Assembly (NCBI RefSeq): GCF_021869535.1
Contig: NW_026262604.1
Span: 6,696,001-6,760,000 of the forward strand
Source of the DNA: Mytilus californianus
Taxonomy: Eukaryota
Direction of reading: 5' to 3'
Length of the DNA stretch: 64,000 bases
The first letter of the stretch is position 1, and every line of letters begins with the position of its first letter. Shown here piece by piece: positions 4,266-32,300 of this stretch. The position numbers and the translations under genes were made by a program. The notes beneath the pieces were generated by a model. It did no database searches and had not been told where the DNA came from. It saw only the letters and a program-made list of their open reading frames with translations.

Positions 4266-6585
4266 TTTTTAGCTCACCTGACCTGAAAGGTCAAGTGAGC
4301 TTTTCTCATCACTTTGCGTCCGTCGTCCGTCGTCCTGCGTCCGTCGTCCGTCAACCGTCGTCCGTAAACTTTTACAAAAATCTTCTCCTCTGAAACTACT
4401 GGGCCAAATTTAACCAAACTTGGCCACAATCATCATTGGGGTATCTAGTTTTAAAAATGTGTGGCGTGACCCTGTCAACCAACCAAGATGGCCGCCACGG
4501 CTAAAAATAGAACATAGGGGTAAAATGCAGTTTTTAGCTTAAAACTCAAAAACCAAAGCATTAAGAGCAAATCTGACATGGGGTAAAATTGTTCATCAGG
4601 TCAAGATCTATCTGCCCTGAAATTTTCAGATGAATCGGACAACCCGTTATTGGGTTGCTGCCCCTGAATTGGTAATTTTAAGGAAATTTTGCTGTTTTTG
4701 GTTATTATCTTGAATATTATTATAGATAGAGATAAACTGTAAACAGCAATAATGTTCAGCAAAGTAAGATTTACAAATAAGTCAATATAACCGAAATGGT
4801 CAGTTGACCCCTTTAGGAGAAATTGCCCTTTATAGTCAATTTTTAACAATTTTTCGTAAATCTTAGTAATCTTTTACAAAAATCTTCTCCTCTGAAACAA
4901 CTGGGCCAAATTAAACCAAACTTTGCCACAATCATCATTGGGGTATCTAGTTTAAAAAATGTGTGGCGTGACCCGGCCAACCAACCAAGATGGCCGCCAC
5001 AGCTAAAAATAAAACATAGGGGTAAAATGCAGTTTTTGGCTTATAACTCAAAAACCAAAGCATTTAGAGCAAATCTGACATGAAGTAAAATTGTTTATCA
5101 GGTCAAGATCTATCTGCCCTAAAATTTTCAGATGAATCGAACAACCTGTTGTTGGGTTGCTGCCCCTGAATTGGTAATTTTAAGGAAATTTTGCTGTTTT
5201 TGGTTATTATCTTGAATATTATTATAGATAGAGATAAACTGTAAACAGCAATAATGTTCAGCAAAGTAAGATTAACAAATAAGTCAACATGACTGAAATG
5301 GTCAGTTGACCCCTTTAGGAGTAATTGCCCTTTATAGTCAATTTTTAACAATTTTTCGTAAATCTTAGTAATCTTTTACAAAAATCTTCTCCTCTGAAAC
5401 TATGTGGCCAAATTAAACCAAACTTGGCAACAATCATCATTTGGTTATCTAGTTTTAAAAATGTGTGGCGTGACCTGGTCAACCAACCAAGATGGCCGCC
5501 ACGGCTAAAAATAGAACATAGGGGTAAAATTCAGTTTTTGGCTTTTAACTCAAAAACCAAAGCATTTAAAGCAAATCTGACATTGGGTAAAATTGTTCAT
5601 CAGGTCAAGATCTATCTGCCCTGAAATTTTCAGATGAATCGGACAACCCGTTATTGGGTTGCTGCCCCTGAATTGGTAATTTTAAGGAAATTTTGCTGTT
5701 TTTGGTTATTATCTTGAATATTATTATAGATAGAGATAAACTGTAAACAGCAATAATGTTCAGCAAAGTAAGATTTACAAATAAGTCAATATAACCGAAA
5801 TGGTCAGTTGACCCCTTTAGGAGTAATTGCCCTTTATAGTCAATTTTTAACCATTTTTCGTAAATCTTAGTAATCTTTTACAAAAATCTTCTCCTCTGAA
5901 ACAACTGGGCCAAATTAAACCAAACTTGGCCACAATCATCATTTGGTTATTTAGTTTTAAAAATGTGTGGCGTGACCTGGTCAACCAACCAAGATGGCCG
6001 CCACGGCTAAAAATAGAACATAGGGGTAAAATTCAGTTTTTGGCTTTTAACTCAAAAACCAAAGCATTTAAAGCAAATCTGACATGAAGTAAAATTGTTT
6101 ATCAGGTCAAGATCTATCTGCCCTGAAATTTTCAGATGAATCGGACAACCCGTTGTTGGGTTGCTGCCCCTGAATTGGTAATTTTAAGGTAATTTTGCTG
6201 TTTTTGGTTATTATCTTGAATATTATTATAGATAGAGATAAACTGTAAAAAACGATAAATGTCGGCAAAGTAAGATCAACAAATAAGTCAACATGACCGA
6301 AATTGTCAGTTGACCCCTTTAGGAGTTATTGCCCTTTATAGTCAATTTTAACCATTTTTTCGTAAATCTTAGTAATCTTTTACAAAAATCTTCTCCTCTG
6401 AAACTACTGGGCCAAGTTAATTATAGATAGAGATAATTGTAAGCAGGAAAAATGTTCAGTAAATTAAGATGTACAAACACATCACCATCACCAAAACACA
6501 ATTTTGTCATGAATCCATCTGCGTCCTTTGTTTAATATTCACATAGACCAAGGTGAGCGACACAGGCTCTTTAGAGCCTCTAGTT
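4266..6585 (+). mobile_element. Helentron-associated non-autonomous element (HINE, pearl/MgE-like) with 502-bp tandem array
   Basis: T-rich start; agctcacct...gtgagct inverted repeat; (CGTC)n microsatellite; units at 4381/4883/5385/5887/6389 (period 502); 3' ggtgagcg subterminal repeat and hairpin aggctct-tt-agagcct followed by ctagtt. Confidence 0.85.
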
Positions 6586-6681
6586 TATATGTTCTTATAT
6601 TGATTATTAATTTTTAAAATTTTATGATTTTAACCATATAAGCTAACCTTAATTAATCAAATTCAAATGTGTGGTTTTTAA

Positions 6682-6867
<186 letters not shown>

Positions 6868-11875: not shown

Positions 11876-12936
11876 TTTTGTCTCGCCTTTTGTGTTTCGT
11901 ATTTCATGTATTTATGAGTTCTTAATGCGAGTATGCGAGACTTAGGTATTGCTATCTGGCGGCAGCGACGTAAACTATTTGTTTGAAGCTATATATTTTA
12001 GAAGGTAGAAGACCTGGATGCTTCATATCTTGTATGCAGATACCTTATGTTACGAAGTTTCTGTCTGTAATATGTCCAATGTCTTTGACTTCATTTTCAT
12101 GTTTCAGCGACTACATGAAAAAAAATCTTGAGTTTTTTTGTCATGTGAATTTCTCACTTATTATGAGTAATAGGATAACCATATTTGGCATATGGGTTCA
12201 TTGCAATGTCTACATGTCCGTCAGACAGGGTTCACCTGACCTCGACCTCATGTCATGGATCAGTGATCAAGGATAAAGTTACGTGGTTAGGTCCGCTTCT
12301 CAAATACTATAAGCAGTTGGTCAGCTATATGTGGTGTATGGAATGACTGTAATGGGTATATGTCTGTCTGGCAGGTTTTATCTGACCTTGACCTCATTTT
12401 CATGGTGAATTGGTCAATGTTAAGTTTTTGAGGTTTGGTCTGTTTTTAAAGTACTATAAGCAATAGGTCAACTATATTTGGTGTATGGAATGGTTGTAAG
12501 GTGTATATGTCTGTCTGGCAGGTACCATCTGACCTTGACCTCTTTTTCATGGTTCATTGGTCAATGTTAAGTTTTTGTTTTTTGGTCTGTTTTTCAAGTA
12601 CTTTTAGCAAAAGGTCAACTATATTTGGTGTTTGGAATTGTTTTAAGGTGTATATGTCTGTCTGGCAGGTATCATCTGACCTTGACCTCATTTTCATGGT
12701 TCATTGGTCAATGTTCAGTTTTTTTTGGTTTTGGTCATTTTTTCAATTATCATAAGCAATAGGTCAACTATATATGGTATATAGAAAAAATGTAAGGTGT
12801 ATATGTCTGCCTGACAGCATTTATCTGACCTGAATTTCTGTGATGTTTTTAATTAAAGCTTTATCTTTAAGACTTTCAACATAAAATCAATGGTCAGTAA
12901 AGCAGGCGAGACATTTCAGCGTGTGCACTCTTGTTT
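11876..12936 (+). mobile_element. HINE-type element with ~148-bp internal tandem array
   Basis: gtctcgcc / ggcgagac subterminal inverted repeats; units at 12359/12506/12653/12802 (tatgtctgtctggcagg...atctgaccttgacctc); T-rich flanks. Confidence 0.75.
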
Positions 12937-13273
12937 TAATTTTCGGTCAACTATTTTCATAACGCATATGATTTTATTTGTGTTTCGTATTTCATGTATT
13001 TATGAGTTCTTAATAAGGATTGATAAAATTGTTTTTGCATATACCGATCTACTTCGCCAATTACCTTAAATCTTCCCCTTAATCTAGCTGTGAATTCTGG
13101 TCAACTAATATAGAATTTGATATGCTTCAAATAGTTTATATTTCTTCCTGTTTCCGATGTCTCTTCTAATGCTCGCGTGTGTTATTAAACTTTCCGCGTA
13201 CATGGAATTGTTTTATATGACAGTGAAAGACCTTAGTAGAACTGGTAAAAACTCAATTAATTAAAAACCTCAC

Positions 13274-13364
13274 CTGACGTTAAAACTGATTGTTTTGTCA
13301 TTGATGAGGAAGTAGTATCCATCAGTTCTGAAGTTAAAAAATGTAAACAGTCACTACATGTTGT
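13274..13364 (-). CDS. Candidate Ser/Thr-rich stalk exon of the FN3-CUB gene
   Basis: cag|...|gtgagg; TTCSDCLHFLTSELMDTTSSSMTKQSVLTS. The best acceptor is phase 0 and does not match the upstream phase-1 donor. Confidence 0.25.
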
Positions 13365-13978
13365 CTGATATAAATATTCTTGCATGTGCATTTTCGCGTA
13401 TTATGGAAACCTCAAGTGCAAATTTTTTGAATGGTTTCTGTAATGAACTACTGACTATACGGTATAGATTTTCTCATAGTTTAAGGCCATACAGTGACCT
13501 ATAGTTAGTAATAACCACATCATTTGGACTTTGATGGACAGTTGTATCATGGGCAATCATACCGCATCACCTTATTTTTATCTGATGTCTAACTTTTCTA
13601 TTGGGTCTTATGCATTTGTTCTTGATCATAATGTCACATGGATTTTTTTATTTGCAGATCTCACACTATCGCTCGCGTTGAACCCTTTTTTCTGAATTTT
13701 ACATGTTCCGACAAGGCTTCGAAATGTTCTTAAAAGTGTGTCCTAGTCTTTCTGACTTGTAAATTGAATCATATTTGTGTAACATTCATCGTTATACAAC
13801 AAATACATACATAGGGGGTTATAAAGAGGGAAAGGAAATACCAAGTGGGAATAAAAAAAAACCATGTCACGTCGAAGATAAACAGAAAACATCATGGTTA
13901 AAAGAATAAAAGACAACTGACAAGGAATACACCATAACCCCTACACAAACAATTTAAGAGAAAACAAGAAAAACGTAC

Positions 13979-14347
13979 CACTGCTACTAATCTTAAGGAA
14001 TAACTTAATCTCGTCGTTGTTGTTTCGAGCTGTCAGAGAAATATCAGCCTCTTTTTCATGAATGATGTAAGTTTTCATAACTTCCTGCTGGTCACAAATT
14101 TCATCATTGTTGGAAATTTCCAGTGTTAAGCCATCACATCTGTTAGTCACGTGGTTACATTGGCCAGTCACATGATCACATCTACTCAAATTTGATTGAG
14201 GAAATTGAACGTCAATAACATGTAAAAGAAAACTGAAATGTGAGGTCACGTGCCATTTGCAGAAAGCATCACGTGGTCGCCATTTCCCATAGAATGGCGT
14301 GATGATAAAAGAGGATGTGTTAGACAGATTTATATTTTCACCACAAC
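13979..14347 (-). CDS. FN3-CUB protein: CUB-like exon 4
   Basis: ttcttcag|...|gtacgt; 369 nt, phase 1/1; GCGENINLSNTSSFIITPFYGKWRPRDAFCKWHVTSH...EIKLFLKISSS, with the CUB-type C-G...C-x-W signature. Confidence 0.8.
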
Positions 14348-14683
14348 CTGAAGAAAAAAAAATATAATTAAAACACCTATGACTTGTATAACTGCTGTTT
14401 TTGTACTTTTTTGTAGAGACAGATCAGATTAGTAGATCACTGTCTTTGGTATTCGAAGACCAATTATCTAATTCCCGGTATGTCATTGACGAAATGAGCA
14501 CGCCTGTTTTGAGATAAAGCAGATGGTTAATCAAAATTGAGAGTAATATACATACATATAACATTCAAAATGGTTCTTGTTTATATGTACTGAATTTGTC
14601 AAATTTTTGTTGATTTTATCAGAGTATTAAAAATTTCAAGGCTCTATAATACATGCAACTATAAAGATAGACCAGCCGTTTAC

Positions 14684-14968
14684 CAGAATATGCAAACATG
14701 TGACCTGTTTCCGAACTGGTACCACCATCTCCATTGCAGCTCATCCAAACTTCAAACCTGGTACCTGGATATTTTGTTGTATCAATTACATAAGAGAACT
14801 GCTGTTTTGATAACAGTATTTTGACTGGTTTCGATGTGTATTCATTCTCATAAAACAAACTGTAGCTTTGTATGAAATCTGTTTTGTATAAAGGTTGTTC
14901 CCAGGTGACCATCATACCGTAAGTGGCTGGTTTTATGGATATATTTCGTGGTTTGTCTGGGGGTGTTC
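14684..14968 (-). CDS. FN3-CUB protein: FN3 exon 4
   Basis: tttaag|...|gtaaac; 285 nt, phase 1/1; TPPDKPRNISIKPATYGMMVTWEQP...YSLFY...PGTRFEVWMSCNGDGGTSSE. Confidence 0.85.
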
Positions 14969-15550
14969 CTTAAATTAAAATTGAAAGCATTATGGACTAA
15001 CGTAGGAGAGGATTCGTCTTTTTTTTTTTAACTATCTGGTTTAAAAAATTTTGATTTAAATATGAGCTATATACACCTTGTAGAACATGAATTGTGAGAA
15101 AATATTTGGCAAAGCTTGTTTTGCTCAGTCCCCACTTCTCTGTTTAGTACGTGTTGTTTGTCTGTGCGCCTTTTTGGCCATGGTATTGATTGTCTGGTTT
15201 TCTACTAGATATGATTGCCTTCTTCGTATCGTCTTATATTTTGAGAATTCTCAAAACAGCCAATTTATATGAAAAAATCTTTCTCTAAAAAATTACCGCA
15301 AACGCTACTGATGTGCGTAAAGAAAAGAATATGAATTAACCAATATCATGATTGATGACGAAAATCGACTATAAGATGGCTGAGACGGTAAAGTAATGTT
15401 CATAAATCATTCTTATCGTGGGATAGGGTTCTTAAAAGTGCAATTTGTTTCTCATTTGATCTTTTATCAGATTATGAATGCCATATCTCTTCTGTTTGTT
15501 TTTTTCATGATTTTTTATGATTTTATGAGTTAAAATAATATTACTATTAC

Positions 15551-15877
15551 CTACAGCAGACACACTTAGTATAAATCCAATTCCACCAATATCGCCATCA
15601 CTAACAAACATTATTTTGACAGTATTACTTCGCTGAACTATTTCTTTATTATATAAACTTCCGCAAAATGTAGAATTTCCCACCTGGAGATAATCTTTTT
15701 TACATCCATCAGAATGTTCTAAACTCAGGGTATCTATGTTAATCTTAAACCAAAGAGAGGCGCCCGTGTTGAAAGACCATGTGCATTGGACATTCGGAAG
15801 ATATGAAGCCTGGCTATGTCCAGGGAATATAATAATCTTCGACTGTCTTGGTAAGATGAATTTAGACACACCACAAG
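15551..15877 (-). CDS. FN3-CUB protein: CUB exon 3 (canonical CUB)
   Basis: gtttcag|...|gtaata; 327 nt, phase 1/1; ACG...FPG...YLPNVQCTWSF...LEHSDGCKKDYLQVG...FCG...FVSDGDIGGIGF. Confidence 0.9.
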
Positions 15878-16456
15878 CTGAAACAATCACAAAAAATATA
15901 TCAAATCTGCACAAGAATGAAAATTACACTTTATAAATTTGCGCTTTTCCGAATTTACTTAGATCATGAACGATCAAACCAGCAAATAGAAAGTCATGAT
16001 TAAACGGAATATAAATCAGAATAGCAAACTCAACTTAATACAGCGTTGCCTGATAGAGTTGGAACCTTAGTTTCCCTTTTTATCAACGAAGAATATACGA
16101 AAAGTGTGCTATAAGTTATGTCAGTACCGAATTCCTCTTCATGAAGCAATAGAACAGCCTTTCATCGAATCACTCATCTTCATTTGCATAGTGTTTTGCT
16201 GACCATCAAATCAAACCTAACTTCACTTAAAGTAAATAAGATATAAGTATAACCTGTTTGACTGAAAGATAATTTCTTTATTTATAATAACTAACTAATT
16301 TAGATGTATAATTGTATCTATTATGTAAATTAGTTTTAATTTAATGGCATTATAAAGTTTTTAAATTGTTATTTCAACTTTTTCAATATATTAATATTTT
16401 TATAACAGGTTTTTTATTAGTTGTCAGAAAAATATCATTTGCTGTTGTCTATCCAT

Positions 16457-17045
16457 AAAAGAGGGACGAAAGATACCAGAGGGACAGTCAAACTCACAGA
16501 TCGAAAACAAACCTTGGCCAAAAATAAAAAGACAAACAGACAAATAATACTACAGATGACACAACATAGAAAACTAAAGACTAAGCAACACGAACCCCAC
16601 CAAAAACTGGGGGTGATCTCAGGTGCTCCGGAAGGGTAAGCAGATCCTGCTCCACATGTGGCACCCATCGTGTTGCTTATGTTATTACAAATCCGGTAAA
16701 TAGTCTAATTCGGAAGGTCACATTCGTGAAAAGGGAAGGGTATTGTAGTTACGACATAAGGAACATATCCGATATCATCTGTGAAACGGTTATTCCATAA
16801 TGGTCAACCAACTCGTGATGGCGTCCGTAAAACTTACGAAGGGATGATTTCAACTTCACCATTTGGAACTCTTGGTTTAATAGCTTCCTTGTGAGTAGCA
16901 AACCTCTATCAATGAAATCATGATAGGAAATACAAGCCCTGGAATATCGTATCAATTGGGATATATATACTCGTATGCAGGCGCTGCTGGAATGTTGCTA
17001 TATAGAAATGGAAAGTTCACAATTGGGAAGCTGAAATCATCTCTT
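16457..17045 (-). mobile_element. Penelope-like retroelement 3' remnant (RT C-terminal region plus tail)
   Basis: IRYSRACISYHDFIDRGLLLTRKLLNQEFQMVKLKSSLRKFYGRHH, preceded by DDFSFPIVNFPFLYSNIPAAPAY. The tail is also seen at 27555-27815, 31640-31885 and 48635-48890. Confidence 0.75.
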
Positions 17046-17238
17046 TTGTCGTTTTGTCTTTTGGTTCTCATTGGAATTCCGACAGTCTGTTGAAAAACAC
17101 GTCCTCCAAACGTAACAAACATAAGCTATTTGGTCGAAATTTTTTACCTAAATTTACGTATTATTCAAAGGTCAAGACGACAACAAAATTAGATTTTTGA
17201 GAATTAAGATGCAATGGGCTACGTAATATTCATTTCGC

Positions 17239-17557
17239 AATAGACTATTTTCATATTACCGACTTTTGACTCCGGATTATATAATTTGTCGACTGGTTAC
17301 CTTGGACATCATGGTACGCGGTCAAGTAAGAGCAACCAAAATAAGTAAAATCAAACATATAATCGGTGTAATTTGAGGGGAAAGTTTACTGTTTTCCGAC
17401 GATTTTGTAGTGAAAAAAAAAAAGTTGTACCGATTGAACGCTTGGTTTAACTTCTTTAGCTTGCTCTTACCTGACTTGGTACCATGATGTCCAAGGTAAC
17501 CAGTCGACAAATTATATAATCCGGAGTCAAAAGTCGGTAATATGAAAATAGTCTATT
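17239..17557. mobile_element. MITE with 79-bp perfect terminal inverted repeats
   Basis: aatagactattttcatattaccgac...catcatggtac is exactly mirrored at the right end; an inverted second copy lies at 23836-24606. Confidence 0.85.
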
Positions 17558-17839
17558 ACACATTAACATTGTACCGAAAATTTTGAATCCAAACTTGTAA
17601 AGGATCTTACTTTGCTAAAAAATATTAGAATCAAAAGAGAAAGAATAAGGAAACCGATCACAATAAATGTACATAAATGTTATAACTGATATCGATAGCA
17701 CCTTTAACCATAACTGCCATAAAGTTTTTTTTTTTCAAAACGCAAAGTCTCTCGGTGCGTCAACTGATTATTAGCTAATTTATATGTCGATACTGCTCCA
17801 GCGCATATTATAATGGTCCGTATGTATAAGTGAACTAAC

Positions 17840-18124
17840 CTGCGCGAATAAAAACTGCCATTGAAAAGTGACCAACTCCGCCGTTCGTTTCTGATGCTAT
17901 CTTGAAGGCAAACATCTGACCTTGACTTTCAGCTGTAGCTATGTTAAGATAAGTTTTGTTGGGGCTTATTTTCATCATATGATCGGCCGAATAGCTACCT
18001 ATCTGGTATTTAACTATGTAGTGTTGAATAATCCCCGGGCGGTCAATTGGACGCTTCCATGATAAACTAATTGAAGAACTTCTTGTTATTACATCTATAC
18101 CGTGTGGTGGATTCGTTGGTTTAT
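17840..18124 (-). CDS. FN3-CUB protein: FN3 exon 3 (not in ORF track)
   Basis: tttctcag|...|gttagt; 285 nt, open, phase 1/1; DKPTNPPHGIDVITRSSSISLSWKRPIDRPGIIQHYIVKYQIG...GQMFAFKIASETNGGVGHFSMAVFIRA. Confidence 0.85.
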
Positions 18125-18539
18125 CTGAGAAAAATAAATATACATAAGAATATGACCAAATATCGAAACTCCTGAAAAAATGTTAGTTTTACCAGAAGTC
18201 GGATGAAGTATAGTTCGACATTTTGATATTATCTAATGTTTGTTTTCCAGCTCAATGTGCATCTACTTTGTGAGTACAGACAAATCAAAGATGCAGGGCA
18301 TATGAATTTTGACATAAGATATGGAAATATTGGAACTTCCGAAGGTTTAAATCAAACACGAAATTGTGCCAAATACGACTAAGGCCATGCATGCCTGTGA
18401 GTAGATAAACTTGAGTGTTTCAAATAATTCAAAATTTACGTCAGATGAATATAGGAATGAAATATTTAATCTCAACACAAAGTGCTGACCGCTTGGCTGG
18501 TGCAAACTTTATTTACAAATTGTTTTAACCTTTACCTAC

Positions 18540-18839
18540 CAACAGTTGATACCATAAAGCTAATTCCACTGCCATCAATTGCTGTGCCAGATTTATGATC
18601 AATTTTTAGCTTTGCTGTCTCTTCTATCCACGAAAAGTATCTAGATTGTTTGCATGTCACATTCCGGTTAGCTGTTATCAGGGTACTATCTGTGCAATCA
18701 TTATGATTTGTTGTTATTTTTAGCCAGTGAACGTTAGATTCCACTTCTACATTCCATTGACAAAACGTGTCTTGATCATTGTGTTTAGACTCCAAAACAA
18801 AACTTTCTTGTGGTTTCAAAGTAACGTTGTTTACGCATG
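18540..18839 (-). CDS. FN3-CUB protein: CUB-like exon 2
   Basis: ttttcacag|...|gtaggt; 300 nt, phase 1/1; ACVNNVTL...DTFCQWNVEV...DCTDS...CKQS...GSGISFMVSTV. Confidence 0.8.
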
Positions 18840-19639
18840 CTGTGAAAACAAAAGATATGAGTACAACACGTTCTATTTCAAAACCGCCATCATGTCCGCT
18901 TGTATATAACAAAGGTTTGAGGAAAAACAAAACCAAACGTCCAAACAGTGTAATTTAACATTGCCTAAAGTAATAGAATAACAGGAGGCAGAAAATACCA
19001 AAAGGGCGACCAAACTCGAAAGTCAAAGATAGACCGATAAAACCGTTACAAAAGACGAGAAGACAAGCAATAGTTTATAAAACACTACATAGAAAATTAT
19101 AGAATCAGCAAAACGAACCTTACTGGGAGATCTCCGGTGTCCCGGAATGTCAGCAGATCTTGCTGTACGTGATATAATTTTAGTATAGCACAATTACATA
19201 ATTTTATTAGTGTTGAATGAAAATGACTGAACTTAAATCCAATTTTAAGCTTCAGTTGGCATTTAATTAATTTGACATAAAAAATAGGGTTTTACTATTC
19301 ATTATGACAGATGAGGAATAACGAAAGAAATAAGAAATAGAATTACAAATTACAAACAATATTTACTAAACATTGCATAACATTCAAAGAAAACACGCCA
19401 AGTATTTCAATATGTATGACAAAATAGTGCAGAAGAAACCAAAAGGGCAAATAAAGAAAAATAAGTCGTGGAAACAGATGACGAACAGAAATAAGACAAA
19501 GAATCAAGTAGCAATCAACAAAATCCTACACAAAACAACTGAAATTTTAGCAACTCAAACTCAACCAAAAACCGGGAGTGTTGGCAGTTAATACTCCACT
19601 AGGTAATGCTTGTATTGTAAATCAACAAATTGTCACAAG

Positions 19640-19905
19640 CGATTTATTTTCCCGACTTTCGCGAGTTAAAAATAACGCGATAATAAATAGTCGCGAATAT
19701 ATAGAACTTGGGTCTTCTCTCATATAATTACATCAAGAAAATGAGTAAACCGCGAAAATAAATCGTCGCGAATATGTAGCACTTGGGTCTTCTCTCATAT
19801 AATTACAACAAGAAAATAAGTAAACCGCGAAAATGAATCACCGAGAAGTCGGCTGAAAATTGCTAAACGCGAAATAAAGTATCCTCGAAAATAAGTTGGT
19901 TTACA
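19640..19905. repeat. MITE remnant with ~76-bp internal tandem duplication
   Basis: cgcgaatat.tag.acttgggtcttctctcatataattaca occurs twice; ends ...ggtttacagta. Confidence 0.5.
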
Positions 19906-20183
19906 GTATATAGCAAGAGATGATCAACACATCGAGACAATTGGCCTCACTTGGACGTTATGCCTTTTTCTTTTTTTGTCACTCCCGTCTTAGTCTATCT
20001 ACATATAGACCTTTTTATAGTTATAAACAACACGACGGATAGCACGAAAGTAATAAGAACTGCTTTCCATTTCAAGCCCTGAGTTTAACCGTTCCCGATT
20101 CTTTGTTCAGGTCTTTTGGTAAATGTTTTGATTTATGTGTAGTATTTTCTGATATTTCGTCTCTAACTATCTATTTTTCTTAC

Positions 20184-20471
20184 CAGATCGAGCATCAATT
20201 ATCTCTGTGTGTGTACTTTCACCATACTGCGATCTCAAAAACAATGTAATTCCATATTTCTGGCCCCTGTTTTTCGATGTATCTATCACGTGAACAGTTG
20301 TATTAGATTCAAGGATCACTTCCGTCCACGTGCCATTGAACGGATAAGTGAAATATGACATAACTACTGTGAAATCAAAGAAATCTGTAGACTGTAGATC
20401 CCATGAAATGTGAAAAACTTTGTTTGATGTTAGAATGGATATGTTTTGCGGAGGATGAAGAGCTGGCACAA
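20184..20471 (-). CDS. FN3-CUB protein: FN3 exon 2
   Basis: tttatttcag|...|gtaaga; 288 nt, phase 1/1; VPALHPPQNISILTSNKVFHISWDL...RGQKYGITLFLRSQYGESTHTEIIDARS. Confidence 0.85.
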
Positions 20472-21526
20472 CTGAAATAAAAGGATTTATATTGAAATTT
20501 TTCTTTCAAACTGAATATACAGGACAATACCGTCACTAGATAGAAACAAGTGTGAATAAATTTCAAATAACATTGAATAGAAAATAAGGTAAACATACGT
20601 CACAGAATGTTTTTATTAAGGAAAAGAAACCACGGAATAAGTGTAAAATATATATGCACTTCTCTCCAAATAACGGTAACTTTATTATTCTATTTGGTTA
20701 ACTTGCAAATTTTATGATTGAATGGATGTTGCTCGCTATGATTCTATAATTACAGGATCATCTTCATGCAAAAAAAAAAAAACAAGACAAAAATGCAGAG
20801 TGGATGCTTTATTTTGTCTGACCTTTATTTATCCCACATGATCATATTGCTCGATTTTAAGAGATAACACATTTGATGAATATAGAAAAAAAAAACATAA
20901 AAATCTAGGCGACCATGACAATAAAAACATAAGTTAACCAAGAAGCACATCTAAAGGTCACCTTAACGTTCTTCAATGATGGAAAATAATCGTAAGTATG
21001 TTCGCTCCTCTGTTTCAAAATAACAAGCATTTCAAAAGACTGTTATAAATTGATAGAATATATATAACGGAACTTAAAAAGTAGAAAAAAATAAAAGGTT
21101 CGTGTCCTAGTTTTTGAGATATCATTAATTGAAAATTTGGCTGGAAATGATTCTCTCTAGATTTTTCATACATATAATATTGGCGCCTTTTTTCTTTCAA
21201 AAGCTTTGAAAAAATAATAATGGTTTTATAAGATTTTCAAATGTGGCTTTTTAAACTATTTGTAATAAAACAATGAAAAGAAAAGTAGGGGTTAGTGGCC
21301 AAAATCTTTAATGACACTAAATGGATAAAACCAGAGGATTCCGAATATCTGACAAAAATTCAAAAACAAGAGAAGCGAACATCCTTTATTGAATAGTATT
21401 ATATTCACACACAATGTTTGAGAATTTTGACCCATGTTCAGATATCCTATTTAGTTATTTACCGTTTTACTTGTAAGATGGTGGATCTAAAAAAAGGAAG
21501 CCAAGTTCATTGAGTGAGTTCCTTAC

Positions 21527-21823
21527 CTTCTACAGAAATGTTATAACTTTTCATTTCTTGTCGGTTTTGATGAAGTATCTGCATTGAGCTGTTGTAAACT
21601 GTCAAATATTCATTCCAACAAATATTTCTACGATTTACAGTAAGAACACTACTACATACAGAGGTTAGATTGTGTGTTACCGCTAAAATTTTGTACCAGA
21701 CATCTGAATGGCTGCTAACGTGCCATATACATACAACTCGAGGTAAAATATCTTCCGAGTTACCTGGTGAATTAAATGATATCACGTCCCCTACTGTGGT
21801 GTTTCCATAGGATTGACTGCACA
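21527..21823 (-). CDS. FN3-CUB protein: CUB-like exon 1
   Basis: attatttcag|...|gtaagg; 297 nt, phase 1/1; CSQSYG...ISFNSPGNSEDILPRVVCIWHVSS...VCSS...ICW...YNISVE. Confidence 0.8.
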
Positions 21824-22672
21824 CTGAAATAATAAAATAGCTACATAATTGCAAAAAAAAAGCACCTTGATTACTTCCAAACTATGCCTTTCTTTTCCAA
21901 TTTCGGTATTTGTTTTCTGTTTATTGACTACAATTCTTAATTAGGATAATCGATCACATGACGAGGAGAAGGCTACTAAGTATCCAAATGAATGTGGTAA
22001 AATTTGGCAATACTTGTTGTAACTTTTCACAATAGAAAACCCTGCAATTGCTAAGAGAGTAGTTATGACGTATGTAAACTTTCATAAAACATTTCTACTA
22101 AACTAATACAATGTATAAGTTTGTTGAATTTTCTATTTTGTCAATTGAAAATTTAAAAATACTAGTATATCAGTAACGTTTATCTTTTTTCAGACGTCAC
22201 CGACTGTCCTAGACACACTAGAAATGCTATAGCCCATAGTAACACCAACGCTTTTTAATGGGCTACCAGACTATCAAAGACAATTGCACTTGAATTTTTT
22301 CAGATAAGCATCGTACCTTTATATCAACATTTAATTGATGACAACCTCATTCAGGAATCAGGTAAAACAATTCCAGTTTAAATATTTTTATGATATATAT
22401 CAAAATGCTAATACTAAGTTACATTTCAAGGAAATGAAATTAAAAAAAAATGTAATTCTAGTAAATTTAATTTAATATTATTTTTTTTTCATTTCCCATT
22501 AAACCTGACATGTTTATAGAAAGTTACCCTATTCGAGGGTCATAAAATTTACTGGAAATCGCGCTTCCAAACTCCAAAACGGTGGCGAAGTCTTTTTCCT
22601 ACAATCACACTTTTTCGGAGTTTGTCGCGTTACCACAGTCAGAAACGAGTGATAAAGTCTTGTCTTACTCAC

Positions 22673-22933
22673 TTGTCCTTAGAAAACTCAGCCCAATCAC
22701 ATTTTCTCGTCCGTTGCGTGTTCGTTCAACTAATGATAACTTGTACATCGATCCAGGGTGTTCCGAAGTGATTGTTGTTTTCGTGTCTCCTTTGTCCACA
22801 TCGATGACACGATGTAAATGTGTACCCATGATATCAAAAACAAGATAAAATGTCGAGTTTGGTCGGTTTTGGCTTGGCCAGGAAACGGAAATGAATCCCG
22901 GATGTAGTTGTGTAATAAGCGGAAATATGGACT
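22673..22933 (-). CDS. FN3-CUB protein: FN3-like exon 1 (not in ORF track)
   Basis: tttttgttctgcag|...|gtgagt; 261 nt, open, phase 1/1; SIFPLITQLHPGFISVSWPSQNRPNSTFYLVF...HPGSMYKLSLVERTRNGRENVIGLSFLRT. Confidence 0.75.
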
Positions 22934-23371
22934 CTGCAGAACAAAAATATGATGAGAACTGGAACTTGTATTGTAAGCTGGGTCATTGTTTTAAGAGAGC
23001 ATAAAAGGAAATCAAGCTAAAGATGACTTTTGAGTTATTTCCTTACTAGGTTAACACAAATAGAACAACTCTGGTTTACAATTTGTATTTTATAGATGCA
23101 GTTTTACAGTCAGTTATACATGAGTGGTCCTTAACCTGCCATAAAAAAGGAATAATAAAAAACACAGGAAAAAGTAAAGAAAAAGGATCAAACTGAACTT
23201 GTTGATATATCTTTAAAAAGTCATGTTTAGAGATTATCAAATAACACCCAATAGTGTCGTTTAACGGAATTTACCTTGGTTAAAAACTATAACTCTATAG
23301 CTCAGTTATGTGTTTGCAATAATCAATTCCATCAGTGGTTTGCAAGTATTCATTTGAAACCGAACAATATA

Positions 23372-23554
23372 TTAAATGTCACTAAAGATTAGAATATACT
23401 TTGATAAATGTATAATATGAACATACAAGTGATCTAGTTGTAACTTCTGAGCATTGAGTTTATCTTTACAACATTTTAACAATGTCAAGATGAATAACAG
23501 CAATAATAGCGCTATATTTCCTAGTAATCTATCCTTTAGTACTTCAAAATCCAT
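23372..23554 (-). CDS. Candidate signal-peptide exon/ORF upstream of the FN3-CUB exons
   Basis: MDFEVLKDRLLGNIALLLLLFILTLLKCC; the paralog at ~48150-48246 is similar. No clean in-frame splice to exon 22933 was found. Confidence 0.3.
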   Translation of the reverse strand: MDFEVLKDRLLGNIALLLLLFILTLLKCCKDKLNAQKLQLDHLYVHIIHLSKYILIFSDI

Positions 23555-23835
23555 TCACTCCGGTATAAATCTTTTGACATTTGACTTTCTTCATTTTCTG
23601 ACCTTTTAAAAGAGTGACAGCTGTCGTCCACCAGCTACATTGGAAAGCTGTCATGTCTTTACTACAAAAATTTTCATTTTATATACATAATAGACCATAT
23701 GACGAGGATGAAAGCAACTATATAAGTTACTGTGTGAGCATAACCCATACCGTGTAGTAAGACTTAAAAGGCCCCGACATGACAAAATGTAAAATAATTT
23801 AAACAAGAAAAACAATGACCGGATATACTTTTGAC

Positions 23836-24606
23836 AATAGACTATTTTCATATTACCGACTTTTGACTCCGGATTATATAATTTGTCGACTGGTTACCTT
23901 GGACATCATGGTACCAAGTCAGGTAAGAGCAAGCTAAAGAAGTAAAACCAAGCCTTCAATCGGTAAATTTTGGGGGAAAATTACCTGGTTAATATTTTTT
24001 TTTCACTACAAAATCATCGGAAAACAGTAAACTTTCCCCTCAAATTACACCGATTATATGTTTGATTTTACTTATTTTGGTTGCTCTTACTTGACCGAGT
24101 ACCATGATGTCCAAGGTAACCAGTCGACAAATTATATAATCCGGAGTCAAAAGTCGGTAATATGATTGATTGATTGTTGGTTGCTTTACGTCCAGTGGCA
24201 AATATTTCATGCATATTCAGGACGAGAACAAATTAACAATAAATATAAAAGGTAGGTTCTGTAATAGGGGCGTCCGGGATTAAGGTCGGAGAAATTTAGA
24301 CTGCCACGGGAAAGTAAATTGGATAGGGACAGAAATTTAGCCTTGCAACAGGTCCCTGCGGACCCCTCAAAGAGTTGTTGCAAGGGTTCTTAACGTGCAA
24401 AGAGCATGGCACTCTCTTTACACAAGGCATCGGATTTAACGTCCCCATTCTGACCGGACGTGGCTGCAAATTTGTACATCCCGCACAGCCAAACGGACGC
24501 CCCACTTTAGCAAGGGTTTTACTGCCGGTCGGAGGAAGACCAATGACGACCATACTTCTATTCCCCAGTCACCCTTGGGGAATCGGTAATATGAAGATAG
24601 TCTATT
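23836..24606. mobile_element. Second 79-bp-TIR MITE copy, interrupted by a SINE
   Basis: Inverted relative to 17239-17557; the right TIR is split at 24166-24582. Confidence 0.8.
24166..24582 (-). mobile_element. SINE-like retroposon with (CAAT)n tail
   Basis: 12-bp TSD tcggtaatatga at 24154-24165 and 24583-24594; GC-richer body; minus-strand 3' tail aatcaatcaa. Confidence 0.8.
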
Positions 24607-27223
24607 AAATAAGGTTTGTTCCGTTGGTACATTGAAATATAATTTTCAAAACGATAAACATTTTTTTCATATTTTTGATTGCCTAAATAGTGCAATAGCG
24701 CTTATTACTAGTATCCGAAATATGTGTTCTTAACACTGAAACTCGAATTATACGATCACATTGATATTGCTCCGTCTGCTGCACAAGAAGGAAAATGATT
24801 GCCTACCGAAGTAAGAATTTCAGAGAGACAAAGGCCGCATCACACTGTTCATGCGAAACATCTATTGTGTACTCAAGTTTTATCGTTGACATCTTTGAAA
24901 TAAAACTAATCGATTATTTAACATGCAGTAAATTCTAATCAGTAGTTAATTAACAGCCTCAAGTATTCGCAAAATAAACGCATTGATATTTTCATAATTA
25001 GTGTTCAAAAACGTAATTAAACTTGTTTCAAATTTGTTTATGCCTCAGTGCAATAACGGCCTTATTTGAGAATTAAACTTTAGAACAACACAGTTCAGTA
25101 TTTACTATATGATTTAGTTTTATGAATAATGCTTCAATATCGATGATGAGTTTAATTTTCACCTAATGTTGCCAATGTAACGGAACTAAAAACAACTGTC
25201 ATATAAATGGGAGGTTTAGCAAGCTATATAATCAGGTTTAACCCACCATTTGCTTGTTAAAATGTCTGATCTAAGTCAGGATTATGACAGCTGTTTTCAA
25301 TCGTTCCGTTGGTTGATAAACTTAAACGTTCGATTTTGTCATTTTTTATTGTCTTCCCCCTTTTTGAATTTACATCGGAGTTCCGTATTAATGTTTTTTT
25401 TTCTTCTCCCTTTTTTTGTTTTATCATGATGTTGTTTATTTTACTTTGATACTTTTACACTACATTCTTACTTTTGCGCATTTTTATTTAGTTTTTAATT
25501 ATAAAAGAAATGTTACTTGTAAAACATTAATGTGACAAAGCCCCAACAAGACATATTGTTAGAATCTGTTTTTCATATTTGACTTTTTAAATACAATTCC
25601 ACTTGTGTTTATGTATTTTGGGCTCTAAGTGTTCTTGAAAAAATCAATTCATAGATGCGCAGCAAAGTTGATATTCATTTTCACCTGTTTCTAGGCTGGC
25701 TCACTTATTTTGATTATGTACAATATAATTTCCTGATTTTGGCGCAACAGAATATTCATTTTCATCCTATTTAAGGTCATATCATTTATTTTGAGTACTT
25801 ACCTGGCAAGTACATTAGTTTACAAAACCCTCCTGACCCCCTAAGAAAATTAAATAAAATCGTTCCTTAATTGTTTTTTGTTTCACAAGCCACAGAACAT
25901 GTAGAATGGAAGAGCATAAACAGTATTGTCTTTCAAATACTTACTATTAGTACTAAAATGGCTGTCTTTAGAACTGATTTTTTCCCCCAAGTAAACTCCT
26001 CATTATTTACTTCGAAAATACTTCAGCAGTATTATGTGTTTCGTTTAAAAAAATGTATAGTTTTACTTATAAAATTCCAGTGAGATGAATTTTGCTTACC
26101 AGTATATGAAATGAATATTAGCAATGTATCTATAACAAAAAATATCCGTATGAAACTATCCATTTCCAAATTTATTTCAAATTTTATCTACAACACATAC
26201 GACCGTCATTTGGCGTTTTTATCAACAACGTATACAGCAGGTGTTTTAACATTTTCTTAGTGAAGATACACTTGCATACAAACTAGTATCTTAAATATTA
26301 GGTCAAATAAAACAATTCAATTTTGATATACACAACAAAATTAATGCTTTTAGAAAATAATCCAAAATTTTGATAGCAGAAACATATCTTAGTCGCCTCG
26401 TTCTAAAAATCATTGGTATGTTTATGTTTTCCAATTTAATATATGTATGAAAGGCTCAAAAATAACACAGACAGTTGTAAATGCATACAATGATAACAAA
26501 CGTATTACTGATTTAAAAAAAAGTATAACATAAAATACCGAACTCCAAGATAAATTAAAATAAAAGAAGTCCATACAAATTGACAAAATCAAACGTTATC
26601 AATCAACGGAATGAGTTAAAACAACTGTAATATTCCTGACTTGGTACAGGCATTTTCCGAAGAAAATGGTGGGTTAAACCTGGTTTTATTGCTGCTAAAC
26701 CTCACACTTGAATGACAGTTGTTTATAGTTCCGTTATATTGACAAAATTGATTGAGCAACCCTAAAAAACATAATAGGTAAATATGACTAGAATTGGGAT
26801 CTAGCAGCAAAATCACAATTGACTTAAACATTCAAACAAACTAATCTAACCAAGATTCTGCTTCATTAAATAAGCTGAAAATATACACAGTAAATATCAA
26901 TGATTTTAGGGACTTATTATTAGAGTTAACCATGTCGTCAGTATTATTATAAAACTAACAATATGTATCTTCATGAAGGCATACATCATAGAGTCTCTAT
27001 GAAAGAAATCTCAAAGTAAGACAAAAGCTTGTTTGTGGGGTTAAAACAGATTCGAATGAATAGAATAATCATAGACTGTTAGTACTAAAAAGTAAAATCC
27101 CAATAATGTCATTTTAGTTCTTAACCGACTTTTAATATTGTATGCAGCAGAGGTAACTAAATTGTTTCCGAAGTTCATTCATTCTAAGTTTAATGGGTTT
27201 AGATATGGATTAAAGTCATTAAT

Positions 27224-27418: not shown

Positions 27419-29346
27419 GATGTTCACATCTCGTAAATCTATTTTGATTATAAACATCAACTGAAAACTGAATCCCTGCTAGAAGAGTTTTTGCGTTTCC
27501 AGCAAAAAGCGTTCTACCTTTAATGGATTGAGAATGTGTTCGTCGTCAGGATAAGCAACGCATATTATGATAGACTTATTACCGGGTTTGTACTAGCTTG
27601 AGCAACACGACGGGTGCCGCATGTGGAGCAGGATCTGCTTACCCTTCCGGTGCACCTGAGATCACCCCAAGCTTGGTGGGATTCGTGTTACTCAGTCTTC
27701 AGTTTTCTATGTTGTGTTTTGTGTACTATTGTTTGTCTGTTGGTCGTTTAGCCATGACGTTGTCAGTTTAATTTCGAATTATGAGTTTGAATGTCCCTCT
27801 TGTATCTTTCGCCTCTTATATGGATGCTGGCAAAATATAAACAGAGTTACATGGAGTAATGTTATAATAATGTAAACATGCAGGCGTTGAACTGAGATAA
27901 GTAAACGGCATCTGATAGAAAAGATGAGAAATGGGAAGTGATGGGGAAACTGAAATCGTCATGTTTGTCATAAATCCTAGTTTTAAGTTGTCCTTCTGTG
28001 TCAATTTCAAGAAGTAGAAAAAGACCTATTACATTTTCCACGCAATAAAAAGAATTTCGTAACATTCTGTTTATCTGAGAGTAAAATATTAATCCATTTC
28101 GGTATATAGATTTTGCTGTCGTGTTTTCTGTTTTTCTTATGTTTAATTTTTAATCAAAAGAAGAGAAGTTGCAACCAAAACAAAGGTATACTCACAAATC
28201 GACAACACCAATTGATTCCAAACTATTTTATGCATGATTACTAAAAAAAGACAATGCATTATTAAATTCGTACTTCAATGCATGTTCAAAGTAATCTAAA
28301 TCTTGATTTAAAATAATGTACAATAGAACGCCTTATGTCGTTTTAACACTTGATATATCAATCAATTTCGCTTTTAAGTATTATCAATTCAGTTTCAGTG
28401 CTTCTGTACTGGCAGGATTTATGACGTAATCATCTATTATTCTCCGTTGATATATTTGGAAGATATAAACAAGTAAAGTTCCAATTCTCTCAAGCAAAGT
28501 TGACCATAGACGATTTTGGCTATTCCTTTGAGGCCATATAACTCATAAAGTTTCTATGTATCTACACATCATTGGTTATTAAATTCTTAGGTTTCAGCAT
28601 TTCTGATAAAGTTAAATCCGGAAAAGCGCTTCGCACGCATGAAATGTATGAGATGTAATTTCCATTGATAAGATAAATGAATTGAATGTAAGCTTGACCT
28701 TCGTCAAACACAATTTTACATTAGTCAAGTATAAAATAGAGTCTGGATGGGGTTTCTTCAATTCTGTTTTCTTTATTTTTTAAGGCAATTTTTTTCTTTT
28801 CTCTAGTTTTTGTACACCAATCTCTATTCTTTATATTTTAGTAACCCATTATTCTCTATTCTTTAAATTTGTTGCACATCATTTTGCATTTTTTGCCCAT
28901 TACTATCTATATCTTATAAACCCAATATAGACCCTCATGGAAGAAAATACATCTATTTTCGTTTTCAAAGCAAAATAACCAAAACATTATATGTTATTTA
29001 TTTCAACCATTTTTATAATGTAAAATCACAAATTGTATATTGCAGACAGGTAAACCGTGAATAACATATGTTGCAAACTAAATAGTCGTTTAAAACAATT
29101 TCTATAAGAACAACTAATCACTTGATATACTTTCTATGCATTCGATAACTTGCTTTGAGTTTTCAATGTTGATGTAGAATATCGCTGCTGAGTAAATATA
29201 TGTCGTCTAAATGTTTGTTTGGTTTAGTAGTTTACAGAGAGATTATCTTGGAAAGTATTTATGAGATTTGTTTGCTCGTTATAGTATATTTTCGTTCTGT
29301 ATTCTTAAATATACCGAATAATTAACGTCTTATCTTTCAGCCTCGA

Positions 29347-29390: not shown

Positions 29391-32300
29391 AGAAAAATTG
29401 GTACCTATAAAGTTATTACTATTAAAAGCACTAAAACTAGTCATGCTGTACGTCTTACATACATATATTAACTACAGTTGTTTGTTATCTTCTGTTCAAA
29501 GCAAGAAGAAGCTGTTCTGGGTAACCTATTAAGTATGAAAAATTGCAGTTTTATATTTTTCGACGTCAGTTCCACAGTCCTGAAATACACAGTTTTTAAA
29601 CCACAAACAATAACAGAGTTTAAATGTACAGTTTTATTTCTATAATGGACTAACTGCTCTTCTATTATAGAATTTCAAATATTAAAATCTAACATACGAC
29701 ACGAACGACTGTCATTTGGCGTTTTTATCAACAACGTTTACTTATGGTGTTTTTACATTTTCTTATTCAAGATACACTTGCATACAAACTATCATCATAA
29801 AGATCGAGTAAAATAAAACAAGTTCAATGTTGATAAACACAACAAAATTAATGCTTTAAGAAAATAATCCAAAATTTTGTTAGCAGAAAAATATCTTAAT
29901 CGCCTCGTTTTAAAAATCATTGGTATGTTTATGTTTTCTAATTTGATAATTTTATGAAAGTCTCAAAAATAACACAGACAGTTATAAATGCATACAATGA
30001 TAACAAACGTATTACTGATTAAAAAAGTATAACATGAATACCGAACTCCAAGATGAATTCAAATAATATGAAGTCCATAAAAACTGACAATATCAAACGT
30101 TATCAATCAACGGAAACAACTGTAATATACCTGATTTGGTACAGACATTTTCCGAAGTAAATAGTCGGTCAAATCTGGTTTTATTGCTGCTAAACCTCAC
30201 ACTTGTATGACAGTTGTTTATAGTTCCGTTATATTGACAAAATTGGTTGAGCAACTCAAACATACCTAATAGGTAAATGTGACTAAAATTGGGATCTAGC
30301 AATCAAAATTGTATAAACATATATCACAACTGACTAAAAAATTCAAACAAACATACAAATTAATCTAACCAAGATTCTCCATCATTTAATAAGCTGAAAA
30401 TATACACAGTGAATATCAATGATCTTAGGGACGTATTATCAGTGTAAACCGTGTCAGTGTTAAAATTTAATTTACAATATGTTTCTTCATGAAGGCATAC
30501 AACATAGAGTCTCTATGAAAGGAACCTTAAAAAATAAAATGACAAAAATACCGAACTTCAAGGAAAATTCAAATCGGAAAGTCCCTTATCAGATGGCAAA
30601 ATTAAAAGCTCAAACACATCAAAAGAATGGAAAACAACTGTCATATTCCTGGCTTGGAAGAGACATTTCCTTATGTAGAAAATGGTGGGTTAAACCTGGT
30701 TTTATAGCTAGCTTCAATAGTTATCAATGCATCATTTGTAAATTATTAAGTCAGGTATTTCGTTACAATAAATTACTTAAAACATTTACTAAATTCTTTC
30801 ATAGATACAAAGATTTGATTTGTGAATTTCGCTGTACCTGTAGAAAACTTATTTAAAACGGTATTTCACATCCTAAATTTTACGGTAATATTGTACTAAA
30901 AGCGCGGACATCACTATGTGATCCGTGTAAACTCATCAAACATTTAAACAAACTTATCAGTAAAGGTTATCTTATTAATGTTGTAATAAGATCTTTGAAT
31001 ATTGTTTACATTGGCACTAACATTGATTTTGTCATCAACAAATTATAACATAACTAAATTGGTATTCTTTTCAAATGGTTTTTTGGGATGTATAAATACA
31101 CATCCACGTTTATTTTCTATATAGAGAATGCTTTATCTATATATAACAAGTTACATATTTATTATAAGGTTAAATCCTAACTATCCTACTGCCTGTCGAT
31201 ACTTTTATTTTGGCATTGCACAAGTCATGTCTTTTTTGACTGTCCATGACGTTAAAACATCCCAGGGATGTGTTTCAATTGATTTTAGTCTCTGATGCAT
31301 GATTTTTTTATTATTAACTGTTTTTGGCTTTTAACTAGCTTTCAGTAACCGCGAGTACTCTCAAATCGTACTTTCGTGTTAATTTGACCTGTTGACACAA
31401 TTTGTAATGCATTTCTGTTATTCAATGTTTCCTTATTTTGTGTTATATGTCGTCTCCACATTTTTAATATGTAACACCTTTGATAAGTATTTAGTATGAC
31501 GATAAATTTTCGCTTCCGTACTCGTACTGTAAACTACAAATTTATTTATTTTGTAAAAAAATGTTTCAGTACTCCTTATGTCGTAACTACAATACCCTTC
31601 CCTTTTCACGAATGTGACCTACCGAATTAGACTATTTACCAGATTTGTAATAACATAAGCAACACGACGGGTGCCACATGTGGAGCAGGATCTGCTTACC
31701 CTTCCGGAGCACCTGAGATCACCCCCAGTTTTTGGTGGGGTTCGTGTTGCTTAGTCTTTAGTTTTCTATGTTCTGTCATCTGTACTATTATTTGTCTGTT
31801 TGTCTTTTTATTTTTGGCCATGGCGTTGTCAGTTTGTTTTCGATCAATGAGTTTGACTGTCCCTCTGTTATCTTTCGTCCCCCTTTTCCTTCTTATTTAT
31901 ATTAGATACGGATTAAAGTCATTATTACAGTAACATACTTTTGTTACGTCATTGATAAGAGGCAACATTACCGATGTTCAAATCTCGTAAAACCATTTAG
32001 AATATAAACAACAAGTGAAAACAGAATCCCTGCTGAAAGAGTTTTTGTGTTCATCGTCAGTCTAAGCAACGCATATTATGGATGCAGACAAATTTTATAG
32101 AGAAATAGATGGAATAATGTTATATTAATGTGAACATGCACGCGTTGCACTGAGATAAGTAAACGGCATATGAAAGGACAGATGAGAAATGGAAGGTGAT
32201 GGGGAAACTGAAATCGTCATGTTTGTCATAAATCCTAATTTTTAGTCGTCCTTCTGTGTGAATTTCAAGAAAAAAAGACCCATTATATTTTCCACGAAAT

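Follow-up and report, generated by a model that had tools for sequence, protein, structure and literature searches.

A 64,000-nucleotide stretch of the Mytilus californianus genome (contig NW_026262604.1, positions 6,696,001 to 6,760,000; henceforth the window, with positions counted from its first letter) carries on its minus strand eight exons that encode, one domain per exon, an alternating array of fibronectin type III (FN3) and CUB domains. We consider it likely, with a probability of roughly 0.7, that the locus is a single-copy protein-coding gene which runs from ~26.2 kb to ~11.0 kb of the window. Its exon structure, its two domain classes, its orthologues in other mussels, the purifying selection acting on it and one of its splice junctions are shown by the analysis. 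The order FN3-CUB-FN3-CUB-FN3-CUB-FN3-CUB is supported, with support that is graded across the exons. The gene is an ordinary lineage-restricted extracellular mosaic in which widespread modules, put together by the usual phase-1 exon shuffling, follow a domain order that has not been described.

Exon structure and domain identity

All eight exons (here numbered E1 to E8) have an AG acceptor and a GT donor at exactly the lengths reported in the initial annotation of this DNA, which had also called them symmetric phase-1 modules. Pyrimidine tracts precede the acceptors and the donors are GTRAG-like. Each exon holds a single open frame that begins at its third base, and all eight are therefore phase 1/1:

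22933-22673, minus strand: E1, 261 nt, AG/GT borders, phase 1/1
21823-21527, minus strand: E2, 297 nt, AG/GT borders, phase 1/1
20471-20184, minus strand: E3, 288 nt, AG/GT borders, phase 1/1
18839-18540, minus strand: E4, 300 nt, AG/GT borders, phase 1/1
18124-17840, minus strand: E5, 285 nt, AG/GT borders, phase 1/1
15877-15551, minus strand: E6, 327 nt, AG/GT borders, phase 1/1
14968-14684, minus strand: E7, 285 nt, AG/GT borders, phase 1/1
14347-13979, minus strand: E8, 369 nt, AG/GT borders, phase 1/1

The codons formed at the seven junctions encode M, V, A, D, A, G and G; since all seven are sense codons, the frame is continuous across the eight exons, as had been proposed. Continuity was checked one junction codon at a time and the exons were analysed singly, with questions about the whole protein addressed via the database orthologues P0014, P0003 and P0001. 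One border has an alternative. In the gene models of M. edulis and M. trossulus, E7 ends at a phase-1 donor 36 nt further upstream (equivalent to window position 14723), which would cost the domain its last 12 residues, i.e., its final strand. In the window the upstream donor reads GTACCA (14723) and the downstream one GTAAAC (14684).

To assign domains, we ran Pfam on single exons, with cut-offs of 21.4 bits for CUB (PF00431) and 25 bits for fn3 (PF00041). E6 scored 42.5 bits (E-value 8.8e-11) and was alone among the CUB exons in passing, which agrees with the earlier view that only one CUB is canonical. Among the FN3 exons, E5 passed (34 bits, E-value 3.5e-8), and both E7 (21.3 bits, E-value 3.2e-4) and E1 (13.3 bits, E-value 0.097) scored under the cut-off. 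E2, E4 and E8 gave no CUB match at E-values up to 1, and E3 of the window gave no fn3 match; the corresponding region of the M. edulis orthologue has a weak match to the FN3-like family Tissue_fac (E-value 2.4e-5).

The two classes are also set apart by their conserved residues. E2, E4, E6 and E8 all carry the four-cysteine CUB pattern with a tryptophan two positions after the second cysteine, and across these exons, aligned from as many as five taxa, C1, C2-x-W, C3, Leu and C4 never vary. Specifically, C1, C26, W28, C48, L53 and C62 (E4 numbering) are invariant in 15 sequences from the four CUB paralogue positions. There are four cysteines each in E2, E4 and E6 and six in E8, where a 15-residue insert bears the two additional ones; the CUB exon of a divergent relative (described below) is without this insert and has the plain four-cysteine pattern. 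The FN3 exons are cysteine-free except for one cysteine in E7, and W18, the strand-B tryptophan, is invariant in 17 sequences of the E1, E3, E5 and E7 set.

Profile-profile comparisons (hhalign, using per-exon orthologue alignments) likewise sorted the exons into two alternating classes. Within the CUB class the probabilities were 88.6% for E2-E6 (E-value 2.6e-6), 29% for E2-E8 and 15% for E4-E6; within the FN3 class they were 88.2% for E5-E7, 22.8% for E3-E7 (E-value 9e-4 over 79 columns), 11% for E1-E3 and 6% for E1-E5; all cross-class pairs were at or below 4%. When compared with PDB sequences, a joint CUB profile matched cubilin CUB5-8 at 1.1e-12 and a joint FN3 profile matched FN3 domains of titin, RPTP, DSCAM, neogenin and fibronectin, down to 6e-19. 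Taken individually, the profiles of E2, E4 and E8 recovered no CUB domain from PDB sequences (that of E2 had no match at all), and the best match of the E3 profile, interferon-lambda receptor D1, was not significant (E-value 0.09). A phmmer search of 1.8 billion proteins with E8 found, beyond orthologues, only multi-CUB proteins at E-values of 4e-8 and weaker, in which the N-terminal part of the domain corresponds to the start of the CUB repeats. The CUB assignment of E2 and E8 is supported by homology (the E2-E6 profile match and the multi-CUB matches of E8, respectively).

Structure prediction, one of the checks suggested at the outset, was carried out with AlphaFold for the two weakest exons, E4 and E1, each taken singly with its paralogue alignment. 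The E4 model has nine strands (predicted local distance difference test, pLDDT, 77.8; predicted template-modelling score, pTM, 0.70), and its top PDB matches in Foldseek are the CUB domains of neuropilin, C1r, MASP-1 and Kremen, with the highest template-modelling (TM) score, 0.80, for Kremen (root-mean-square deviation 2.1). The E1 model has seven strands (pLDDT 90.8) and its top PDB matches are all FN3 domains (TM score 0.72-0.80). The predicted folds are therefore those of a CUB domain for E4 and of an FN3 domain for E1. Together, Pfam, cysteines, profiles and models bear out the strict alternation of one domain per exon.

In CUB domains of the Ca2+-binding subtype, an acidic triad (a Glu in strand 5, the Asp of C-x-x-D-Y and the Asp of F-x-S-D) coordinates Ca2+, which in the CUBs of cubilin, C1r/C1s, the MASPs and PCPE lets the domain clamp a basic side chain of a protein ligand. 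Among solved structures, E6 is closest to cubilin CUB5-8 (3kq4; phmmer E-value 2e-12), and its LE, DY and SD motifs are in register with those of cubilin CUB5 and PCPE-1. In the CUB alignment, E2, E4 and E8 are without these acidic residues. Because E6 alone has kept them, and because its rate of protein change is low (see below), we propose that E6 would be the main ligand-binding module and would act in a Ca2+-dependent manner. The FN3 domains and the three degenerate CUBs might then form a rod-like, glycosylated spacer or provide secondary surfaces for contact.

The repeats are only 13-26% identical to one another. The best links between them are E2-E6 and E3-E7, with weaker ones for E4-E8 and E1-E5, and the similarities E2-E6, E3-E7 and E5-E7 would fit duplication of a four-exon block or plain retention of the domain consensus equally well. 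The strong E5-E7 link fits neither duplication model simply, and both exons may have kept a generic FN3 consensus. Because identity is this low, two-exon and four-exon duplication are not distinguishable, and the old two-exon tandem expansion that had been suggested for this gene is not demonstrable.

Orthologues, selection and expression

Three Mytilus species have orthologues, which share the exon borders of the window and are 78-94% identical to it over E8. Among the closest proteins is an unnamed M. coruscus product of 653 amino acids (94% identity over E8); the M. trossulus orthologue is LOC134718114 ('uncharacterized', 580 amino acids), and that of M. edulis is an unnamed product of 764 amino acids, automatically named 'Cubilin' by UniRef. 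In all three genomes the orthologous locus is colinear with the window, including a neighbouring gene with WD40 repeats. All three public models are incomplete: E1 is in none, the M. trossulus model starts inside E3, and that of M. coruscus lacks E4 and contains only part of E2. The claim that the architecture belongs to no named gene thus stands insofar as no named counterpart was found, with the qualification that incomplete 'uncharacterized' models do exist in databases.

At the genome level, all eight exons are intact in M. trossulus with borders as in the window. E2-E8 are intact in M. edulis, where E1 has a 1-nt deletion near its 3' end (locus L001, matching window position 22692). The M. 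coruscus assembly (locus L014) has 1-nt indels in E1, E2 and E4 (matching window positions 22698, 21667 and 18745), and the skipped and truncated exons of the M. coruscus model result from such indels in the assembly. The E1 frame breaks in these two assemblies were missing from the initial annotation.

Outside these species we found a single relative, on a 1.7-kb contig of run SRR26215658 (L015), in which an FN3 exon (46% identity to E7) is followed by a CUB exon (32% identity to E8) with the same phase-1 borders. A word search with exon-sized E6 found no fragments in other taxa, and one with the M. trossulus protein returned nothing beyond the three Mytilus orthologues and a generic multi-CUB protein from a snail. 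Neighbours in the ESM Atlas were small unnamed clusters labelled 'CUB/Fibronectin type III' with a score of only 0.80, and we treat them as leads only. In the literature we found no description of an alternating FN3-CUB protein or of a Mytilus FN3-CUB protein. These results agree with the suggestion that the protein is lineage-specific.

In the 1.65-Gb source genome the gene is single-copy, save for one decayed partial duplicate:

45436-48376, minus strand: decayed duplicate of the 5' part of the gene (blastn: colinear with 20277-23684, 74-91% identity)

Lying within an array of PAN mini-proteins, the duplicate is a compacted set of fragments from E3, E2, E1 and an upstream segment (23420-23684), of which only ~45 residues of E3 and ~16 of E1 are still readable. 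It is a pseudogene fragment and lies outside the working gene.

The gene is under purifying selection, which is strongest on the canonical CUB and moderate elsewhere. Between the window and either M. edulis or M. trossulus, synonymous divergence (dS) is ~0.31 and the ratio of non-synonymous to synonymous divergence (dN/dS) is ~0.33 overall (dS to M. coruscus is 0.10, as for a sister species). By exon, dN/dS is 0.12-0.17 in E6, 0.22-0.33 in E8, E7 and E2, and 0.43-0.57 in E1, E3, E4 and E5. Apart from the E1 break, the eight exons contain no indels relative to M. edulis or M. trossulus, while the introns are full of them.

RNA evidence came from four runs compared with positions 12901-18900. 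The spliced transcripts that had been proposed as a check were found in part: a 318-nt contig of run X3 is split between 15550-15700 and 14804-14967, i.e., it spans the E6-E7 junction with the predicted 582-nt intron removed, and no transcript contains E1. Other X3 contigs fall in E4 (18621-18829), E5 (17879-18031) and E8, and the E4 contig is free of gaps across the position that is frameshifted in the M. coruscus assembly. Outside repeat-derived stretches, X3 coverage is confined to exons. This support is modest (depth 2-5, ~4% mismatches), and X3 probably derives from a sister species.

Two repeats lie within the introns of the gene. A dispersed repeat at 16451-16762 (E5-E6 intron), with further copies at 27571-27825, 31573-31887 and 48630-48893, encodes '…HQKLGVISGAPEG' on one strand; the repeat has very high depth in the RNA runs and accounts for nearly all reads at the locus. 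An inverted-repeat element of ~330 bp occurs at 17226-17557 (E5-E6 intron) and at 23823-24165 (the intron upstream of E1), with 87-97% identity, and is probably an insertion that resembles a miniature inverted-repeat transposable element.

Gene ends, proposed protein and rival readings

The span originally flagged (13979-22933) is not the full gene, as coding parts probably extend it on both sides, with one candidate exon upstream (E0) and two exons downstream (E9 and E10):

26163-26100, minus strand: E0, candidate first coding exon, ATG plus 21 codons (MDSFIRIFFVIDTLLIFISYT), phase-1 GTAAGC donor
13327-13274, minus strand: E9, Ser/Thr-rich linker, 54 nt, phase 1/1, encodes LMDTTSSSMTKQSVLTS
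11090-10993, minus strand: E10, candidate terminal coding exon, hydrophobic tail …YVYVILIGYLSYCY… then stop

Among the ATG-started, hydrophobic phase-1 exons returned by a scan, E0 alone combined a strong donor with a position in M. edulis-conserved sequence. M. edulis, M. trossulus and M. coruscus all share its ATG, its length and its G|GTAAG donor, with no indels. Its junction codon with E1 is GAG, and it would probably encode a signal peptide. Two other candidates for the N-terminus were rejected. The open reading frame at 23554 (MDFEVLKDRLL…LLLLFILTLLKC) resembles a signal peptide, but splicing from its phase-1 donors to E1 would create a TAG codon, and the short M. edulis intron does not contain this segment. 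The M. coruscus model begins with an exon (window 24892-24830) that does not look like a signal peptide and falls in a lineage-specific insert; it was treated as a prediction artefact.

At the other end, E9 is part of all three orthologous protein models, which continue with 'ELMDTT…' after E8, and four species share its AG and GT borders. E10 reads GSSQQFPQYVYVILIGYLSYCYQDFRKDANEI followed by a stop in the window and corresponds by homology to the exon that ends the M. edulis model. M. edulis and M. trossulus share its acceptor; in M. coruscus E10 had no match. Owing to one extra base in the window, E10 is read in a different frame than in M. edulis, with a hydrophobic tail in both, and the last exon of the M. 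trossulus RefSeq model is different again.

With E0, E9 and E10 the complete product would probably have ~875 amino acids and no cytoplasmic domain. The eight domain exons contain 16 NxS/T sequons, which together with the distribution of cysteines fits an extracellular protein. We propose a layout of a probable signal peptide, four FN3-CUB pairs, a short Ser/Thr stalk and a short hydrophobic C-terminal tail. This tail, whether it resembles a glycosylphosphatidylinositol (GPI) signal or forms a minimal membrane anchor, may tether the protein to the cell surface; the protein would then act as a surface-tethered or secreted binding protein devoid of a cytoplasmic signalling domain. The signal peptide, the tether, the binding of Ca2+ and ligand and the biological role (including the 'receptor or matrix protein' of the initial annotation) are put forward here as predictions.

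On either side of the gene the window contains further repeated sequence. Upstream, open stretches on the minus strand that end in '…CHSSVRFSSNKTRFNPPFSSENACTKSGILQLF' recur at 26619-26831, 30096-30302 and 36833-37003; they resemble copies of one exon of a neighbouring family of small secreted PAN-type proteins and mark the upstream limit of the gene. Downstream, about four tandem copies of a ~500-bp unit with long open stretches ('KITKIYEKLLKIDYKGQ…') occupy 4600-6330 (minus strand), between the end of the FN3-CUB gene and the WD40-repeat neighbour. Positions 6650-6847 are 92% identical to M. edulis and correspond to the end of that opposite-strand WD40/beta-propeller gene, which is kept in both M. 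edulis and M. trossulus.

Several observations weigh against a working gene with this structure. E2, E3 and E8 taken singly have no significant match in Pfam or among PDB sequences, and the AlphaFold alignments included canonical paralogues, so that the models are not fully independent of the hypothesis. A single X3 contig, at depth 4.5 and from a sister organism, is the sole evidence for a splice junction; the raw RNA run X11, which bears the species label of the window, yielded zero exon reads in the ~6% of the run that was read; and E0 and E1 appear in no transcript of the RNA runs (compared over the interval given above) and in no database gene model. A contig of run X2 extends 28 nt beyond the E8 donor, a hint of read-through or of RNA left unspliced. 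The C-terminus, and with it the anchoring, is uncertain because of the E10 frame difference and the different end of the M. trossulus model. Finally, the 1-nt indels in M. coruscus and M. edulis may be assembly errors (of a long-read assembly for M. coruscus) or real, lineage-specific decay of exons under weaker constraint.

If the last of these were decay, the locus could be a unitary pseudogene or a nearly silent relic, with open frames that are leftovers and no working protein. We regard this as distinctly unlikely. The breaks in E1, E2 and E4 of M. coruscus and E1 of M. edulis, the empty X11 sample and the uniformly partial database models would fit such a relic, as would the relatively high dN/dS of E1, E3, E4 and E5 and the presence of a decayed duplicate nearby. 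Yet the eight exons (~2.4 kb) are open, with intact splice sites, in both the window and M. trossulus; they have remained free of indels at a dS of ~0.3 while the introns became riddled with them; dN/dS is 0.33 overall and as low as 0.12 in E6; and X3 provides a spliced contig and exon-only coverage, including the gap-free E4 position. Moreover, the pseudogene copy at 45-48 kb gives an example of genuine decay in this region. Another possibility, which we consider unlikely, is that the gene works but that its product is an untethered, soluble component of a matrix or body fluid (for example shell, byssus, egg coat or haemolymph) that ends near E8 or E9 and leaves E10 unused. The C-terminus does differ in every gene model, a 182-amino-acid database fragment (P0002) and the X2 contig both read through the E8 donor, and in the window such read-through meets a stop after 13 codons; the E10 frame, besides, is not conserved between the window and M. 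edulis, and E10 went unmatched in M. coruscus. Against this, different species share the donors of E8 and E9 and the acceptors of E9 and E10, tethered proteins typically have a hydrophobic tail after a Ser/Thr stalk, and both E10 frames contain a hydrophobic stretch.

A bolder version of the tethered protein can also be formulated, namely a near Mytilus-only, GPI-anchored receptor in which FN3 domains and 'dead' CUBs form a stiff, glycosylated rod that presents one functional Ca2+-binding CUB, and which takes part in fast-evolving recognition (for instance of gametes, larval settlement cues or pathogens). This seems to us quite improbable. Were it true, it would explain the moderate dN/dS outside E6, and (FN3-CUB)n would represent a new class of alternating CUB arrays beside CUB-Sushi and CUB-LDLa. 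The reading that we favour remains the single-copy protein-coding gene for an ordinary extracellular mosaic.

Relation to known CUB proteins and significance

Cubilin consists of 8 EGF and 27 consecutive CUB domains with no FN3, and is membrane-associated with no signalling domain. The likeness of the mussel protein to cubilin lies in E6, which matches CUB5-8 as described above and has the acidic residues of the Ca2+ site aligned. By contrast, the mussel protein has no EGF domains, its four CUBs are each separated by FN3, and its length is only ~875 amino acids, so it does not belong with cubilin; the M. edulis orthologue owes its name 'Cubilin' to a transfer at the level of domains, not to orthology.

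A closer parallel in general design is offered by CSMD1-3 and SEZ6 (CUB-Sushi) and by LRP3 and LRP12 (CUB-LDLa), which are generally known to have the same strict alternation of CUB with a small spacer, one-domain exons and arrays tethered to the cell surface, as proposed for the mussel protein. In the latter, however, FN3 is the spacer, the array has no more than four pairs, only one of the four CUBs is not degenerate, and a long transmembrane and cytoplasmic part is missing; the searches revealed no sequence orthology to these proteins. The E4 model superposes best on the CUBs of neuropilin, Kremen and Neto2. Neuropilins, Kremen, Neto and CDCP1 are extracellular, ligand-capturing CUB co-receptors on a short tether, as proposed here; they differ in combining CUB with FV/VIII, MAM, kringle, WSC or LDLa domains, in having real transmembrane and cytoplasmic parts and in the absence of any FN3 alternation. 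As for the Mytilus orthologues themselves, their models are truncated, and the window locus carries the eight-domain frame in full.

Molluscs are a phylum rich in lineage-specific mosaic proteins. If our model is right, this locus would provide the first complete gene structure for an unstudied Mytilus family with truncated or mis-named public models, and FN3 would join the short list of spacers that alternate with CUB in extracellular arrays. Its impact past annotation and mollusc biology would be modest. The gene is also a clean textbook example of phase-1 exon modularity, and the contrast between one constrained CUB of the Ca2+-binding type and three relaxed ones offers a simple idea as to which module may bind the ligand.

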